From the NCBI RefSeq assembly GCF_037042905.1, contig NC_087247.1, positions 19,282,001 to 19,346,000 of the forward strand: a DNA stretch of 64,000 nt, written 5' to 3'. Each line of letters begins with the position of its first letter. Position 1 is the first letter of the stretch. This document shows positions 3,788 to 15,495 of this stretch, in pieces. The stretch comes from Lytechinus pictus (lineage: Eukaryota). The translations under genes were made by a program, and so were the position numbers. The notes under the pieces were generated by a model. That model saw only the letters and a list, made by a program, of their open reading frames with translations. It was not told the DNA's origin and searched no databases.

Positions 3788-5196
3788 CTTTAAGGATAAT
3801 GAAAGCATGTAGAAATAATTAAGTGTACAATTCAGACCCATTGTTTAGGAGGGCATTAGTTCATTATCACCGGGTATCTTTGGGACAAAAAAGCTTGACT
3901 GATTACCGAGTGCAGGTTATGTCACCAAAGAAATTGATGAGTATTACTCGTTTTCTTTAAATAAAATAATGATGTGGTCCCTCATTGATCAATCACTCTC
4001 ATCTCAAAACCATGGCCTGCCATGATATTTTGCTAATAGCTGGTTGCATAAAAGAAAAGATTATGTGTTGGGCAAAGAGGTGGTATTTCACAAAATGATT
4101 AAATGTGACTTTTTCTCTTTGTGTGTGTCATAAAGGAATTTTACCGTCACTCACGGTCACTGCATGTGATAGAAAAAAAAATGGAAAGAAGAAAAAAAAA
4201 ACATTGGAAAGGAATTTATTTTTCACACATTCATGTTTGTTCTCAAAGTTATTAAAAGCATTGGCTATTATTGATTTGACTTTTTTAAAATCTGAGCTAC
4301 TAGGTCCCACTTGTTGCCTGTGTCATATGATATGTTACAAACATGAAGCCCAGAAAAACTTGTGTACGAAAATCATTATTTATTGCTTCGTGCCTCAAAA
4401 AAGTAAAATATAAATTTATAAAGTGACCAGAAACACCATCTTAATTTCATCACATACACTTATGTGTTCTATTATTATCGGCATGATAGAAATTACACAA
4501 AATCTTAGATTATAACGCATCAAAAGCATTTCTTTATATTTTAAAATTTTCTTTTGATATGATGTAAAATGATGACCTTCAGATTATCCACAAGAAAATT
4601 TTACAAAACAAGCAATAGTATTCTGTTAAATTGAAATTAAGTAAAAAACAATATATGTAGTTCCATGTATAGAATTTTTTGTATGGTTTGGATTCTCCTA
4701 TATTGGAGATGCGTAAGAAAAAAAATTTGTGGCTAATTATGTTCCCCTTTTGTATTTATGAAATCCCATATGAGTTTTAATAGAAAAACTTGATCCAGAT
4801 TTAAAATAGAGCCAATATAATTTTTTTTGGAAAATGTCCACTTTTGCTTGGAATTGCCCTTGGTTTCAGAGTTTTTAGGTTGATAGAAAGGCATCCATGT
4901 ACATATTTCATCTCCCCTTTGTTTTTTTTGTTTTTTTAATGTCTATAACATTAACTTATGCCTTTAAACAAATTTATGAATCTATGGGCTGGAGTGATCA
5001 GCAACATATAAAAACTCACCCTGATGGGTGAATGATCAGGAAACTACACTTAATTAGGTGAATAAATTCTGAACAATCCTACAGAATGATTCTGAGTATG
5101 TGCAATATAATATCATGTGATAAATCACATGAAATAAAAATGGACTAAATACAGTGCGGGTATCCAAAGAAAACATGTGTTGGCAGTACTACTTAC

Positions 5197-6598: not shown

Positions 6599-7613
6599 AT
6601 CACTATCAACCAACTTCTACTGTTCAAAGCAACAAAAAAAAAAATTATAGTGCATGTAACCATGCAGTAAAATGCTTCATATCTGTGACAGTTTTTGGCG
6701 AGTTAGTTCCAACACAATTAGCGGATGTAGAGAACAGTAAGAAATGAGTCAAGATTGTATCCAGAATAGAATAGAAACAAAAGACTGAATGTAGATATCA
6801 AAATTGTAGGCACAGCTGTAGTCACAAGATGGCGCTATCTCCAATGTGCATGAAATGTCCAAGTGCGCCATCCAGATGCCTAGATGCAGTTTTATGTCCA
6901 TAAATAACAAACTAAGGTGGTTACTAGGGTGGTTACCAAGGGCAATGGGCATAGTTAGCAAGATTTCTGCAGTTGCACCTGACCCACCCCTTATACACGG
7001 GCATACTTAAAGCTAAAGGCACTCACACGTATTGCGAGGTTAGTATATATATATATATTTTAGAGTTGTCGTTAACATCGCTTCATAACGTGAATGATGT
7101 TAGCCGAAACCCATTCCGCTACTCACCAGGGCTTTTTCTGGTGAAAAGCGTTCCATTTTCAATTTTTAACATATTTTTTTATTTAACCACTTGACTGCTA
7201 TAGGCTGTAATGCGCACTGACCCCCCTGGTGCTACTGAATGGGACTAACAAGTTAGATCTATTTGGGACTACTACCGACAGCAACTTGGGGGAAAAATTG
7301 TAAATAATCACATCACTTTCCTCATCACTTTTTCCAATATCCATACAAAAAATCATCTTCCCCTTGTGACACAGATCTTTCACTATATTTATTACTCCTA
7401 TCGTCTAAAGTTTCGTCAAAATCCTTCTGATTCACTTCTCCACTGCGAGTTGCCATTTTGAACTGAGCGCCGTACACTATCACTATGGAAAAGTGAATAC
7501 AAACATTTATAAATCACTGCGAAAGTTTCAATAACTTTTGTGGAATAGCGCCATCTGGTGACCATAGTCTGAAATTTGATATACATGCGCTGTTTTCATC
7601 GTAGGGGTATTAA

Positions 7614-8374
7614 AGGGATGCGAAAGTCGCCAAACGTGGTGGTTTTGAGCTAGGCCTGGCTCGAGTAATCTTCGCAAATCTCCGTTCATCGTCGGCAACC
7701 CGAGAACTCAATGTAGAGATACGCGGTGGGCCTTGCTTTCGAAAAATATCGAATAGTAACGGTCGTTCACGATCGCTTGAAGGCCTTCGGTGGGCGGCAA
7801 TTGGCGAGTCAATTAAGCTTGGAAAAAGCCTAAAGATCGCCAGCGCACTTCCGGGTACGGGTTCCCTCCTCCCGACGGCCGGCTACAGCCTACGATCGCC
7901 TTCGACAAATGTTTACCGGTATCAAAAGCTGAATATTTTTGCTGTTTTCTTGTTATATCGCGCGTTATGGAAAAAAAAAAATCGTCTTGGGATAGTTCAA
8001 GAGTAAGGCTTCGGACAGCACATGAATCTTGGTTGAAACAAAGGGCAATTTTTGTAAACGAGAGAGGAATTGGAAACAACTATGACGAAGAATTCGCTCA
8101 TCATCTGTTGCAGCAACATGGTGCGATGTGCACTAGTGTTACCAAACCCTGTATCCCTTCTCCCGAGCTGTCGGCGCGGACAAGAGGCATCACCAGCACC
8201 AACGATGCTGTGAGTGTGAGTGGCTCTGCCTCGAGCTCTGGTTCTGCCCGTGCTTGGCTGGGTCGGTGAGAGTTGTAATTCAGATGTTCGAGCTCAACCT
8301 CAACTTCAAGTCGCTGAGCAACCCCATGCTCAAGTTATTAGGGATCCTCCTAGACTCACCCCTATAAAGATCAG
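7614..8374 (+). mobile_element. Left end of a Kolobok-like DNA transposon with a remnant exon (ORF 7967-8269)
   Basis: TTAA (7610-7613) followed by an AGGGA terminus. The ORF motif RVRLRTAHESW...G...DEEFAHHLL resembles the RV-I-A-W...D-E-A--LL motif I associate with Kolobok-linked ORFs. Donor cag|gtaagg near 8375. No right TIR found. Confidence 0.45.
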
Positions 8375-9278
8375 GTAAGGATGAGTGGACTAGCATGACT
8401 AGGCCTAGTATAATAGTAAAAAGTATTATTTTCTATTTTTCAAAATTATGAAAATATTGTACATCATGTACGGTACATACATGCATCTATCTAGACTTTG
8501 CTTGTTCGAATTGGCCTTGAGGACTCCGTGATGATATTTAGGGAATATTGGATGGCCTTGAGTGGGATGCGTTGAAATATTGTACGAGCTGAAGCACAAT
8601 TGGATGAGTCGAAGACGAATCAAATTAAAATATTGTTCTTCAGCGAGTAACAATATTTCTATGCATCCCACGAAAATTGGTCATCCAATATTCCTATTAT
8701 TATTTAGATACCCCACAAAGCTAAACATGAATTAATAAAGAAATGTTCGTTTAGTAGTAGGCTGTAGGCCTAGTGTACGGTACTGGTATGTAAACAACGA
8801 ATTCACACACATGCATTGCATTGTATGTATTGCATAGTACATAAAATTGTAGCGTGCATCGCGTCATCTGCATAATTTTTATGAAAAGTGCAGTAATACG
8901 CAATGCAATTTTGTTGTGACGTTACAATAGCTTCATGCGCACAATCATTTATTAACCAATGATGATCTTGTGGGCGGGGCAAAATATTCATTTCGTCCAA
9001 TATTTTAAAAAAATTTTTAATACTTTGTCTCCTCAAAACAACCTCGCGAGACGTCAAAGAATATATCTGCACCTCTAAAACTCTACATCTAAATAATTTT
9101 TAATATTTTGAGATATACCTCTTCATCAGGGAGCCTTGAAACTCTTCCCATAGACGCATAAGTGAGACCTCCACACCCTGACGGATTTAGAAATCCATCG
9201 TTTGGTAAGTTTCAGATCCAAAGCTTACTTGATCTATACTCTATTTCTAATTCTAACATAAAAAGAAAAGGCATAAAC

Positions 9279-9455
9279 TTATTGCAAGTGCCGTGCCAGT
9301 GGTTATCCTGTGCACGGCGGCGGTAATGTACCCATCATGCCCATGGGTGAGTACTACTATACTACCTCGTAGTATTAGTGTGTGGTTATCGGTCACCCAT
9401 GGGTACATTACCGCCACCGTGCACAGGATAACCGCTGGCACGGCACTTGCAATAA
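9279..9455. repeat. Palindromic element with ~62-bp inverted arms
   Basis: TTATTGCAAGTGCCGTGCCAG...GTACCCAT is mirrored by ATGGGTAC...CTGGCACGGCACTTGCAATAA with 2 mismatches. Confidence 0.85.
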
Positions 9456-11006
9456 TTTTTTTTATTATCTACATTTTACATGAAGTAAGCTTTGGATATG
9501 AAACTTACCAAACGATATGAAGCCAATTTCAATTCCTCTCTGTCTTTCTGGTACTTTATATCTATGATTTTACTTAATGTCGAAGCAGGCATGCGGCCAA
9601 TTCGGTGGATTTCTCTATACGCACAGAGAGGGCGCGCGATATTATTTAATAAACTTGCTTGTTTACGTCGTTTACGTCAGATCAGCTGTAGTTGCTGGTT
9701 GCGTTCTAGGCGCTCCGCATTTTTTTCGCTGTTCAGCGTTATTTTATGATGTAGCGCCATCAGCGATTATACGTGAGATGCCTGTTGATTTTTTTGGTAC
9801 AATTTCCTATTATGCGCCGGCGACTTGAATCTAGACTGTTCGATAAGAAAAATTCGCATTTCGATTGTTGTTTGCGTAATTTCCACCGCAGTATTAAGGA
9901 TCGGACGGAGTATCTTGGCCGAGATTTGAAGGTAAGCGTTTAAAATCCCTTTTTATGAATATTTTGGAGCATATTTTTAAAATTAATTCAATGAACAGAT
10001 TTAGATGAATAAATTTAGTATATTGTGAAGATTTTGGCGTGTCATTCTCTCACATTCGTGTGATGAATGAAAACGTCAAAATTCATTATGAAATGACATG
10101 CGTTGTGCGACTGCGAGGTTAGTACAACTAACCTCGCATGCTTGTGATTGTGTGAGTGGTTATCGGTCACTCACACTAATACGAGGTTCGTATATATATA
10201 CGAACCTCGTACACCGGACCGTGTTTGACCGTAGATTTCGAAGTAGTCGGCAAACATTGCTTCATTGCTGAAGTAATATTTGCCGAAACTCCTTCTCGCT
10301 ATGCACCGGGGCTCTTTCCGGTAAGTAGCAATACATAACAAAATTATACATATGATATTATACTAATTTCATTTAAAAAGAGCAAATTTCGCTTACCTCG
10401 GCCTAGCAAGTGACTTCGTTTGTCTCTTCTAAGGAAATACAAGGAAGCCCGTTGGTGGCGCTAATAAATTTCACAACCTTGATTCAGCTCCTCGGTAATT
10501 TTATAACTGTGTCTAAATTCTTTGAATGCGCAATTCTTATGATTAATTTACTAATTATGGGCACCAATAAATAAAATACCTTCAAAAACATAATTCAAGA
10601 TTACTATTTGCGATGATAACACTTTTGTTGCAATTAATTTAAAACGATGACTAATATAATTTTTTTTTTTAAATACACATGCCTGGAATGAAACCAGCTG
10701 CAGTACAAGCAGTATATTAACGTCACGGTATACCAAAGTGTGAGTGCCAAAGTCTATATACAATGAAAAGATTGGACACTTCATGGACTTCGCGTAATGC
10801 CTTGCGTCGATTTGCGTGTAAAATAGTGTAGGTTCCTAATCTTTCCCTTGTCGTGTCTTTGATATGAATATAAATCGCGCGCCCTCTTTAGGCGAAAATT
10901 GATATCTACGCTGACCAAATTTTATCTCCGTGAAATCTTCACTAAAGATCAAGAAAATATACATAGGCCTATTGGCCATATTAGCTAATATGCCCGCCGC
11001 CATTAA

Positions 11007-14000
11007 CAGTAGAGGCGCTGGTCAGAAAATTGGGATCGTCCCCGTTTACAGGGACTGTCTCAGTCTATAAGGATTTCTCCACACAAGAAATCTAGGAAAG
11101 TTCATTCACCTGTTGAGTGCCGACACCAATCAAGAGTGCTAGTCAATGTAAACATATCGGGTTTCATAACAAGATTATTGGAAGACGCAAGTCATAATAA
11201 ATAAACGGTGAACTGGGGGGAATTGAGGTCACTGAATCTATTTTTAGCACTCTCAATCACTCTAGGCGACACCCCAATACTTACCCGTGCTAATAAACTG
11301 GGACTCCACTCACGCGCGTTTGGGCCTCCCTAGCTTAGAACTAAGCACTAATATCACCTTAAAAACCACTCATCCTACGAACGAGGTTATAATATAACCT
11401 CGTTCTCGGCTGTATACCTCTCTATTGTTAAAATATACATTGGTCATTTTCCCCCCATCTGTTGCCCAAAGCATCGCGAATCAGTTCATACTTGAACTGA
11501 TCCGTTGATGTAAACTGTTATTTTGACAGATATGACTTTAAATTAATAAATATGATATAAAAAATGAATAAAAACTCACCGATTTCTCAACGTGAACCTC
11601 ATCCAACTGCCTCCATTACGTCTATTGTGTTCGACAGTGACAAATCGAAAAAGAAAAAAGAACTCACGAAACCATAGAGGCTCATCAACCCGTTTGGACC
11701 ACTGACCATTGATGTTTCGACGAAACTTTGCTTGTAATGAATTCTGGTAAGGAAGTCTTGATAGCCTCAATCAAGACAAATTTGCAATTTTGTTTCATGT
11801 TTATACAAAGTCAAAAGTGATACTAGTAGTTGTGAAAGTGGAATGAAATAAGACATTTTTGTATGAAATAAAAAAAAATTAAGGAGAAATTCAGTTGTTT
11901 CGATTTTGTTAATTTTCTGTTATGGGACTCTTGATGAAAAAGCCCCTTATTCTTTTCTAATTAATGAACCTGACGATAGAAATACTTTTCACAAAGTTAG
12001 GCATTAATTTCCAAATTATTATGTAACAGAAATTCAGAATAACAAACTTTACTGTGGGTCTAATCAGGGGAGAATCCAGGATTTTCCAAAGGGGGAGGGG
12101 GTGGTTTCTTTTACAGAAAAAAATAACAAGCTCCCCCCCCCCCGTGAAGGAGATTTATGTAACGAATAATTTCACAATTATGATTTGATTTTGATTTATT
12201 TGATTTAGTTATTTATTTATTATGATAACAGCTCCTCGCTATACAGTATGAAGTTTCAAGTTTGTTTTCATTGATTTAAAATCCTAACCTAAAGGATTTT
12301 CATTAAGAAATAAATAAAATAAAAAATCACTTACCACAAAGGCCTATTTAGGGGTAGATCACAATTTTCAAGGGGAGGGCGGGAAAGTTTCAAGTTAATT
12401 TAATTGATTTCAAATCCAAACATAAAGGATTACAATCAAATGAAATTAACAGTACAAATTATCAAACAAAATGGATGCAAAATAAATGTGTTCTATGGCT
12501 TTCGAGGGGGTGGGCACGAGCCTGATGTGCTCCCCATCCTGGATAAATAAAAGAAACTCATTAAAAAGAATTGGAACGTAATTATGTTCTGTTTTATCAC
12601 TTTGTCTTGAGTTTCTTGCCCTAGCTTCCATTCTTTTCACATTTCAGCCTTTACCCATATTAATTTCAGGATGGTACAAAATGTTGGCTTACAAAAGTGA
12701 TATGATGATGAATATTCCATAATAATATGAAAAATGATAGAAAACCAAAATAATAATATTAATAATTAACCCTTACAATGATAGTACTCAATAAAAGAGA
12801 GGCATCGGGGATCGAGAAAAGAAGCAATAACCCCCCCCCCCCAAAAAAAAAAGGCATCATATTTCCTTTCAGCATACGACAAGATACAGTTCATTATAGA
12901 ATAAACTAAGCTGATGGCGCTAAAATTATTCTGATGTATAAAATAATAAAAATAAAATATTGTGTGTCAGGGGAGAAAGAGACTACTATCGCTGGATCTT
13001 GGATTTCCGAAATAGAAGCATCACCGGAAACAGGTATCTGTGGTGAGAAGCATTTTTATACAGCTTTGTAGAGGACAGTGGTGTGGTCGCTTCCGTTAGC
13101 TTTCTTTAATTGAGCACAAGAGGGCGCGTTACATCCTCTACGTAGAAGTCTATGCGCTGCTGAGGATCATGACAAATTTCATCATACATTCTGACGATTT
13201 ACCGAAGAGTCCTCGAATAATTGACAAGATATAGTTGAGTCCAAGATAAATTCCAGCAACAACGGAAGGAAGATCAACGTTTGGTTCGGGGGGAAAGACT
13301 GGTAAGTCAAACTCTCTTACTTTTACATTTTTTATCACAAATTTTGTCTATGAGTACGCCTCACATACCTCTAGTCCCATCCCCTACCTTTTGCTGTTTG
13401 GCAAATGGTCGGGGATGACGAGTGTTAAAAACTAAATCTACAAGGTATGTATAATCTATTTATAAATTTAATAATGTTTAATCGGTACTCACCGGTTCTT
13501 TTGTTGCATTTTCAGACCATTTCTCACAATTCTTCGTAAATATTTGCGGCAAATTTTGTCGCCATAGACAGCTTAGCGTCCATCTTTATTGATAAATGGA
13601 GCGCCCTTTACGATAGTTGTTAATGCCGTGGAGAAATCGTTAGGCATTTTGGCCTGTGTTCAAGGCGTTCTTTCTGTTTTATTTTTATATTGAAGATTGT
13701 GCATTTGTTGAATAGCGCCGTCTACGTCAGGTATGAGATCGAGTGTATAAATACACTCTTCCAAAATAATTATGATTCCGACCTGGCGCTGTTTAACTTC
13801 AATCTCTTTCACCTAAATTAGCGATGAATGCTAGCATTATAAAATATATATTATTAACGTCTGACGAAAAGAATAACCAACCGATCAGCTGACGAGAACG
13901 CGAATCACGTGATCTTCATATCAGCTTCGATCGCGAGTCAGAAGAGAGGAGCAGTTGCCCAGAAAATCAGGAAAAAGCCGTGAAAATGTAAGTTCCCCTT

Positions 14001-14366
14001 CATTTCTTTCAATTTTTTTTATTGCTAACAATGTATTCAATTAGTGAGATCGAAATGTAATGATTAGACAGTACGATAGCTTGTAGTTTTGATAAAATAC
14101 AAAAATAATCATCTTCACAAAGATTTCTGACACAAAATACTACTGATGTCGCCTATGAGGTCCATACATGTAATGTTGGACCTCATTGGTACTAGGAGTG
14201 CTCTCAATTCCCCTAATTGCTGCCTTTGTCCCGTAGGGAGAAGTGAAGAAAAAACGTCCCCATAAACAAGGACAGTCTCAATTTATCAAGACATAATTTG
14301 TCTTGGTTTATAAGGATATCCTTGTTTTCTGGGACAATCCCAATTTTTGAACCAGCGCCTCTACTG
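11007..14366. mobile_element. Non-autonomous TIR DNA transposon, 3.36 kb, 5-bp TSD (ATTAA), superfamily unresolved
   Basis: Left TIR CAGTAGAGGCGCTGGTCAGAAAATTGGGATCGTCCC; right end GGGACAATCCCAATTTTTGAACCAGCGCCTCTACTG. ATTAA flanks both ends (11002-11006 and 14367-14371). Confidence 0.75.
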
Positions 14367-15177
14367 ATTAATACCGCTCATCTAAGTAAAAAATCAAGGA
14401 GAAGTCACAGAAGGATCTAAATGATTCGGTAAGTGTCATAGCAGAATGTGAAATACCAGATTACTGGTGATATTTTATGTGGGCAAAAGCCCACTATCTT
14501 TTTGACTTGTCGTGTGTGTCGCGTGCATATGAGTATGACTGATATTCCTTCGCACGCGAGATGATATGATTATGAACCCATGGGTGGTTATCGGTAAGAA
14601 TTAAGATATTTTTAGCAATATATCGACAGAGAATTTTCTTAACAATAACAGCCCTAATTATTATACCAGGCATTGGTCGAGTGCTAACATTACAGCCTAA
14701 CTTACACCCGAGTCCCACAGAGTCAGAGAGAGAGAGAGAGATCATCCCACAAAAGGCGCAAGGCCACATCACAAAATGAGTCACTCACACTAATCTCAGT
14801 GCATGGGACCACGACAAAGAACAATAACGAAAAGGTCGGCCATAGGTTTATTACTAGGGTTAGATCTACTTGCATATAAAACGCAAATGAAATTGATTAT
14901 GAAGAAAGAAGAATGAAGAGATCCATACGCGTGTGCTTACCACTTCCCAGTTACAGAATATAAAGTTGTAAATTACAATGACAATATATTATAGGCAGCT
15001 TCTACTTTGCTTTGCAATCCGCTTTAGCCTTTGCGCTATGTTGTTTTATAAGCCGCGCCCTCTCTGGTTAGTTTTAAAGCGGAAAAAGAAGACAATGATA
15101 GAAAATGAAGATTCGAAGCCAAAATGAAAGAAAGAAAGAAAGAAAGAAAAAAGAAAGATGGAGAGTTATAGTAAGAA

Positions 15178-15495
15178 NNNNNNNNNNNNNNNNNNNNNNN
15201 NNNNNNNNNNNNNNNNNNNNNNNNNNNNNNNNNNNNNNNNNNNNNNNNNNNNNNNNNNNNNNNNNNNNNNNNNNNNNNNNNNNNNNNNNNNNNNNNNNNN
15301 NNNNNNNNNNNNNNNNNNNNNNNNNNNNNNNNNNNNNNNNNNNNNNNNNNNNNNNNNNNNNNNNNNNNNNNNNNNNNNNNNNNNNNNNNNNNNNNNNNNN
15401 NNNNNNNNNNNNNNNNNNNNNNNNNNNNNNNNNNNNNNNNNNNNNNNNNNNNNNNNNNNNNNNNNNNNNNNNNNNNNNNNNNNNNNNNNNNNNNN
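15178..15495. other. Assembly gap (N run)
   Basis: Run of N bases. Confidence 0.99.

Follow-up and report, generated by a model that had tools for sequence, protein, structure and literature searches.

The hallmarks of the Helitrons and their HUH nucleases are the lack of a target-site duplication (TSD), a 3′ hairpin before CTRR and insertion between A and T. Elements of the MULE/MuDR type make duplications of 8-10 bp, and non-autonomous derivatives with weak terminal repeats exist. Tyrosine recombinases (Cryptons) and HUH nucleases (Helitrons) are not known to leave duplications whose length is fixed and whose sequence varies. The AcademH DNA transposons have TSDs of 9-10 bp (PMC10045372). 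In P elements, double insertions are found exactly one 8-bp duplication apart (the singed-weak allele), and an occupied site stays favoured (PMC2577343, PMC5932611).

The locus described here lies in a stretch of 64,000 nucleotides of Lytechinus pictus DNA (the window). It adds to the cases of stacking in one TSD, for which fly P elements are the precedent. It is no new recombination system, and a false lead raised by its repeated 9-mer is thereby removed. It provides a clean natural example outside Drosophila, in which one TSD is three elements deep and the arrangement recurs at no fewer than seven loci.

The 9-mer and its flanking elements

The 12-mer GTGGTTATCGGT, which is GTG followed by the 9-mer GTTATCGGT (hereafter t), has three exact occurrences in the window, all on the + strand (9382-9393, 10156-10167 and 14584-14595), as the earlier note on this DNA had reported. 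Shuffled windows gave a mean of 0.19 matches, and three or more were reached in 1 of 100 shuffles. The copies of t themselves (+ strand) are at 9385-9393, at 14587-14595 and at 10159-10167, where a single copy is common to the right side of one element (D) and the left side of the next (B). The arms are ...TAGTATTAGTGTGTG and CACCCATGGGTACATT at site 1, and ...GTGTGAGTG and CACTCACACTAAT at site 2, while at site 3 ...AACCCATGGGTG precedes the core and unrelated sequence follows it. Two arm types, X and Y, in shuffled combinations can therefore be read as previously described. They are, however, the two different ends of oppositely oriented elements and not the interchangeable arms of a recombination signature, and the GTG before each core is the final trinucleotide of a transposon.

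From left to right, the order is H-X', t, Y-D-X', t, X-B-Y', t. This succession of remnant end, D and B, each followed by t, indicates that successive insertions used one 9-bp target. We consider it very probable that t is the 9-bp TSD of transposons that landed one after another in the same nine bases, and not a recombinase site. The insertion of a first element at t would have duplicated the 9-mer; subsequent insertions would have cut the same 9 bp beside the resident end, each adding one copy of t, and the resident end itself may attract the next insertion, via bound transposase or a hairpin/cruciform. Neither an intermediate haplotype (t-B-t alone) nor an empty site was recovered from the public runs, which yielded short repeat-copy contigs and no bridging record, and the order of insertion is accordingly one that we infer.

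D is a 765-bp non-autonomous transposon (9394-10158, + strand) in the Y...X' orientation (CACCCATGGGTACATT ... GTGTGAGTG). B is interrupted: in its whole span of 10168-14586, about 985 bp belong to B itself and the rest to a nested insert of 3.4 kb. The left part (10168-10965, + strand) begins with the X end CACTCACACTAATA followed by a hairpin with a 14-bp stem, and the right part (14383-14586, + strand) finishes with the Y' end ...AACCCATGGGTG. In other B copies 10965 is joined straight to 14383, and their homology begins exactly at 10168 and ends at 14586. The nested insertion (10966-14382) is composite, with an inner element at 11007-14366 that has 48-bp inverted ends starting CAGTAGAGGCGCTGG and ATTAA on both sides; contigs from the public runs join 10965 to 14394 and 10995 to 14367.

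To the left of site 1, H (9350-9384, + strand), the remnant of an older element, retains 35 bp of its X' terminus, as direct reading and comparison with the X' end of D show. It comprises half of the subterminal hairpin plus ...TAGTATTAGTGTGTG. The window has no fourth copy of t upstream, where the left duplication of H would be expected. Inside the hairpin loop H adjoins D2 (9197-9349, + strand), which is oriented opposite to D. D2 is the Y' end of an older, truncated D-type element and ends ...CCCATGGGTG at 9349. D2 forms the left arm of a 320-bp palindrome: its inverted repeats I1 and I2 are 87-89% complementary to 9399-9516, positions 6-123 of D align to 9335-9197 at 76%, and matches of ~140 bp to many D copies are found on both strands. 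The partner duplication of D2, AGTACTACT, was not found beside an X start upstream, and an exact copy at 5185 was rejected as the partner as its context is unrelated.

Further upstream, the X terminus of a third related family, C (CACTCACACGTATTGCGAGGTTAG...; 7020-7182, + strand), is cut off at 7183 by a high-copy repeat of ~430 bp (7183-7613). This terminus shows that kin elements cluster in this region of the window. The stretch 7020-9384 was also considered as a single element with X ends and rejected; its flanking 9-mers mismatch and it is a mosaic of other repeats.

The earlier note had proposed an att-like site of a tyrosine recombinase (Crypton), with cassettes piling up by site-specific recombination at a shared asymmetric core. 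Three identical cores and shuffled arm combinations would fit such a site, as would the sharp homology breakpoints at the 9-mer edges, which had been predicted and which comparison with other genomic copies bears out, including the exact start at 10168. A genome-wide search for the core, however, gave just 18 occurrences of GTGGTTATCGGT in 812 Mb, not above the reversed control with its 59. Fifteen of the sites lie beyond the window locus and have unrelated flanks. The 12-mer is thus clustered locally and is not a genome-wide motif. A Pfam search of the local ORFs (6.5-14.5 kb) gave no hit and no recombinase. Together with the individual 9-mers of other B and D copies, described below, these results make an att-like site extremely improbable.

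Families B and D in the genome

Both families are dispersed, with conserved termini, unrelated flanks and sharp homology ends. The genome holds at least 606 candidate places for D, whose best copies are 95-97% identical, and at least 586 for B, with up to 100% identity across the first 73 nt. The asymmetric ends are common to the two: CACTCACAC and a strong subterminal hairpin make up the X end, and CACCCATGGG the Y end, so that B and D both read CAC...GTG. Most copies are solo, each with its own 9-bp duplication, which is perfect or has one mismatch in 25 of the 34 copies that have both ends. Matching 9-mers of their own are present at both ends of other copies, about 20 of B and about 12 of D, and as these repeats differ from copy to copy, t is a TSD and not a shared recombination core. 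These copies show that B and D are non-autonomous cut-and-paste DNA transposon families that make 9-bp duplications of variable sequence. Such variable 9-bp direct repeats are characteristic of a DDE-type transposase that cuts its target with a 9-bp stagger. Of the repeated site-specific integration envisaged previously, the repeated integration of non-autonomous elements at one spot stands and the mechanism does not, because the 9-mer is a TSD.

The subterminal hairpins of the X ends are strong (-14.6 kcal/mol, z -10, for B; -13.9 kcal/mol, z -5.6, for the second), and stem-loops of this kind could be taken as origins used by a Helitron- or IS200-like rolling-circle nuclease of the HUH type, an alternative that the earlier note had also raised. 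They are confined to one end type, both ends read CAC...GTG, and most copies have duplications of fixed length at both ends. With the region also free of Rfam and Pfam hits, the probability of an HUH origin is close to nil, and that suggestion is abandoned.

Twenty-eight empty sites were reconstructed, and their target logo is weak and weakly palindromic, with G at position 1, T at 4 and C at 9. Such a preference would be in keeping with t being an exceptionally good target that was hit independently, the resident element playing no role; in P elements, tandem junctions occupy sites near the preferred motif (PMC5932611). Yet t agrees with the logo at position 1 only, the spacers of the seven junctions described below have no common motif beyond a frequent first G, and the about 15 other genomic copies of the 12-mer bear no element. 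Independent hits on a good target are therefore unlikely. The P-element model, in which the terminal bases restore the target motif, was rejected for these families: the flanks of the 28 empty sites have no GTG/CAC preference, and the terminal trinucleotides thus give no visible restoration of a target motif.

Recurrence of 9-nt junctions at other loci

Facing X ends were searched for genome-wide with the pattern GTGTGAGTG-N(0-30)-CACTCACAC; a 7-mer version was too noisy. Among the 29 places found, 12 are one conserved repeat with a 27-nt spacer and the other 17 are independent. The spacer is exactly 9 nt in 6 of these 17 (binomial P 1e-5), with six different sequences and different partner families. 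A seventh case with a degenerate end, L051, was spotted by eye. The partner combinations at the 9-nt junctions are D-B, B-like with D, D-D, C-C and C-B. Wherever it could be checked (the window, L050, L052, L079 and L081), the spacer is the same as the outer duplication of a partner, as in the singed-weak type; these are five loci in all, and three intact copies of t are found in the window only. In L050, CATTCTGAC is both left of D and between D and B, and another 9-mer flanks B on the outside. In L052, L079 and L081, one partner's outer end was looked for and not found. Rearrangements or a non-standard step may thus have occurred at these four loci.

The recurrence also bears on whether D, spacer and B transpose together as a single composite element with CACCCATGGGT inverted ends, the inner spacer matching the outer duplication by chance or conversion. 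The outer ends are a perfect 11-bp inverted repeat, and D-9-B is contiguous in L050, L051 and L052 at 78-89% identity. However, the inner 9-mer is a different one at every locus and equals the local flank there, the partners vary, and B and D copies are mostly solo with duplications of their own. No D-9-B copies were seen that share an inner spacer and have different outer duplications. Movement as a block is consequently very unlikely, and the junctions are better explained by successive insertions into one duplicated target.

Kin elements are also inserted within X-end hairpins, at L046, L062, L069 and position 9350 of the window. With exact motifs, none of the five tandem-class places has 9-nt spacing and no tail-to-tail place was found at all; two tandem-class 9-bp cases with degenerate ends are known, site 1 of the window and L047. 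As exact motifs of the X type outnumber those of the Y type about 2.7-fold, the head-to-head bias of the 9-nt junctions is only suggestive. It is conceivable, though we hold it only tentatively, that insertion is directed by ends, a resident X end, through its bound transposase or its hairpin/cruciform, capturing the incoming transpososome and so steering the new element into the flanking 9 bp, preferentially head-to-head. If so, such homing would create X'-9-X palindromic junctions and multi-element stacks genome-wide. It would represent a target-capture rule distinct from the P-element model in which the terminal repeat restores the target motif, and would belong to a transposon group never studied biochemically. 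A possible preference for the hairpin-bearing end is a clue to the choice of target by the transposase.

From stacks of this kind arise long palindromes and tandem arrays that serve as substrates for rearrangement and satellite formation. The stacks are also a warning for annotation, as a short 'core' that is identical between repeats can be a target duplication that they share.

Comparison with known transposons

The length of the TSD points to AcademH or MULE as candidate superfamilies. The 9-bp TSD of the B and D copies falls within the 9-10-bp range of AcademH (PMC10045372); the families differ from AcademH in that no transposase or helicase remnant was found in B, D or the neighbouring sequence. 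The likeness to MULE/MuDR is in the length of the duplication. Five MULE-domain matches were found in the genome, and at two of these loci the family end motifs were not found in the ~10 kb fetched for each, which covered ~8 kb upstream. A search for an autonomous copy with CACTCACAC / CCCATGGGTG ends, or for a transposase linked to them, found none. Two long B-like candidates with short B homology, L057 and L072, were rejected as autonomous elements, as they are B copies carrying nested inserts.

Helitrons and other HUH elements differ from B and D, which have 9-bp duplications and CAC...GTG ends. The likeness to Crypton or other tyrosine-recombinase att sites, inverted arms around a short asymmetric spacer, is superficial; here the spacer varies between copies and is doubled at both ends of each element, and no recombinase is seen. 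In arrangement the stack resembles multiple P-element insertions at one target, among them head-to-head and tandem P dimers, where two elements likewise lie one duplication length apart with the same duplication flanking them outside, often in inverted orientation, and where the occupied site remains or becomes a hotspot. Unlike in P elements, the duplication here is 9 bp instead of 8, the two ends, X and Y, are asymmetric, and the stack consists of three elements of different families.

The repeated 9-mer and the element ends beside it

The 12-mer GTGGTTATCGGT, which consists of GTG and a 9-mer, has three exact matches on the forward strand of the window, at 9382, 10156 and 14584 (mean of 0.19 in shuffled window sequence); the exact search bears out the three core copies, and the flanks, described in the earlier note. 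As a core shared genome-wide the 12-mer did not hold up. The 812-Mb assembly contains 18 copies, against 59 for the reversed control, and the flanks at the 15 sites beyond this locus are unrelated. This makes the motif a local feature rather than the core of a repeat dispersed through the genome.

The sharp break in homology looked for at the edge of the core is present. A genome search with the sequence around the second site returned dozens of near-identical copies of one element, B, whose homology starts exactly at 10168, the first base after the 9-mer. Copies elsewhere align with window positions 10168-10965 and continue straight into 14383-14586; they are about 985 bp long, whereas the window copy is split by a 3.4-kb nested insertion (10966-14382). 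B, found at no fewer than 586 candidate genomic places, begins with CACTCACACTAATA (the X end) and finishes with AACCCATGGGTG (the Y' end, the unlike terminus reversed). A second non-autonomous family, D (window 9394-10158; about 770 bp; best copies 95-97% identical; at least 606 candidate genomic places), has the termini CACCCATGGGTACATT and GTGTGAGTG, which are the two end types of B, oriented the other way round. The interchangeable arms, X and Y, are therefore the opposite, dissimilar ends of a single kind of transposon. The GTG preceding each core is the final three bases of an element.

The subterminal hairpin of the X end (10177-10210, 10112-10137 and from 7035 onward) is strong (-14.6 and -13.9 kcal/mol; z of -10 and -5.6); the twin-hairpin module of another note, on 7020-10330, is probably this feature. 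Its stem differs between families in a compensatory manner, GGTTCG/CGAACC in B versus GGTTAG/CTAACC in D and in a third, related family (C-type), consistent with structural conservation or with a palindromic site for protein binding.

Other B and D copies carry their own 9-bp direct repeat on both sides, varying by locus (e.g. TCCTCCGGT, ACTTTACCC and GGCCATGCC). Among the fetched loci the duplication is perfect or has one mismatch in 25 of the 34 copies with both ends, and the remaining copies are mostly one base off in register. GTTATCGGT is therefore a target-site duplication (t) left by a staggered 9-bp cut rather than a conserved crossover site. Because the duplications vary between loci, the tyrosine-recombinase site proposed in the earlier note is excluded, as is its alternative, a stem-loop origin for an HUH nuclease. 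Ordinary non-autonomous DNA transposons, stacked and sharing one target-site duplication, make up the locus.

Anatomy of the stack and its surroundings

The leftmost component (9197-9349) is the Y' end of a truncated, older D-type element; it is 87-89% complementary to the start of D and forms the left arm of a 320-bp palindrome. Next to it are 35 bp (9350-9384) left over from the X' end of an element, H, that is older still, and the truncated element meets H within the hairpin loop of that end. There follow the first copy of t (9385-9393), element D, the second copy (10159-10167), element B with its nested insert (10168-14586) and the third copy (14587-14595), such that one 9-bp target is common to three element ends. 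A fourth copy of t was looked for upstream of the stack and none was found; the left part of H has thus been lost. Another repeat, with at least 214 candidate genomic places, is represented by a short fragment six bases to the right of the stack (14602-14665), and the original target was therefore at the edge of an older repeat. Since the public runs gave short contigs only, with no intermediate haplotype among them, the order of insertion is one that we infer.

The insert that splits B is itself nested: an inner element (11007-14366), with 48-bp inverted ends starting CAGTAGAGGCGCTGG and ATTAA on both sides, lies within a thin outer layer (10966-11006 and 14367-14382). Contigs from other runs include the forms in which the inner parts are missing. 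Four samples of one study (runs X11-X14; 105-159 million letters) each contain more than half of the words sampled from the repeat-rich stretch 9100-15000. DNA data sets of this small size should hold fewer, which raises the possibility of enriched libraries or of RNA. A single 15-mer, GTCACTCACACTAAT (14780-14794), 186 bp to the right of the stack, exactly reproduces the sequence in which t passes into the first bases of B; no hairpin follows it and it may be a relic of an X terminus. The analysis covered the window outside the N run at 15178-15495.

To the left, a C-type kin element begins at 7020, and its X end is broken by a repeat of about 430 bp (7183-7613) that has a great many nearly identical copies (up to 98%). 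At 7967-8269, 100 codons stay open from an initial ATG, and a sequence resembling a GT splice donor comes next. Pfam gives no match for this stretch, which has a single relative, at 92%, elsewhere in the genome (7610-8186); it could represent either a captured fragment or a first exon.

Nine-nucleotide spacing between facing X ends

The pattern GTGTGAGTG-N(0-30)-CACTCACAC, two facing X ends, occurs at 29 genomic places versus one for the control. Twelve of these belong to a single repeat, whose conserved 27-nt spacer is the same in all 12 (e.g. G000:C2:26935-26979); this module seems to be part of a separate repeat with two facing X termini internally. The spacer is exactly 9 nt in six of the remaining 17 places (binomial probability 1e-5, with 31 lengths possible), the six spacers all differ, and the partners vary (D-B, B-like with D, D-D, C-C and C-B). 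A seventh case, at locus L051, has the spacer CAGCCTGTC and one degenerate end. In the window and at four other loci (L050, L052, L079 and L081) the spacer equals the outer duplication of at least one partner. Taken together, the differing spacers and partners and this identity indicate that the inner 9-mer always belongs to the local target, and a composite travelling as one block was ruled out on that ground. All three copies of t are intact only in the window; at L050 B has another 9-mer as its outer flank, and at three other loci the outer end of one partner was not found.

At L051 (1560-1590; G000:C6:5674424-5674455) a D copy has its terminal 9-mer twice in tandem (GTGTGAGTG GTGTGAGTG), directly before the 9-nt spacer and the facing X end; insertion of an element in the last 9 bp, followed by its excision, could have left this footprint.

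Choice of target and comparison with known systems

A target logo built on the 28 empty sites that were reconstructed shows weak preferences (G at 1, T at 4, a purine at 6 and C at 9), and GTTATCGGT agrees with it at position 1 only; this poor fit makes a hot target sequence an unlikely cause of the repeated insertion. Kin elements have inserted inside the subterminal X-end hairpin of resident elements at L046, L062, L069 and window position 9350, and wherever both of its ends can be seen the inserted element has a 9-bp duplication of its own. A resident end might thus attract the next insertion, and there is a hint of such end-directed targeting. Head-to-head X-X pairs predominate, with 9-nt spacing at none of five tandem-class places and no tail-to-tail places; since the sample contains about 2.7 times fewer exact Y motifs than X motifs, and two tandem-class cases (window site 1 and L047) have degenerate ends, the orientation bias is no more than suggestive.

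The 9-bp duplication of B and D fits AcademH, where it is 9-10 bp (PMC10045372), or MULE/MuDR. No transposase remnant is present locally, and the MULE domain has five matches only in the genome; at the two loci fetched, about 8 kb of upstream sequence contains no X or Y motif.

In P elements, double insertions in one target are spaced exactly by the duplication length, as in the singed-weak allele, in head-to-head dimers from screens and in the tandem dimers of natural strains (PMC2577343; PMC5932611). The explanation given there is that the terminal bases restore a palindromic target motif (PMC2577343); the empty-site flanks show no GTG/CAC preference, so this is not visibly at work here. Same-target double insertions are also known for R1, hobo and bacterial insertion sequences (PMC5932611). 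As in P elements, the elements of the window stack lie one duplication length apart, and the B/D locus adds a further case to the known phenomenon of same-target stacking.
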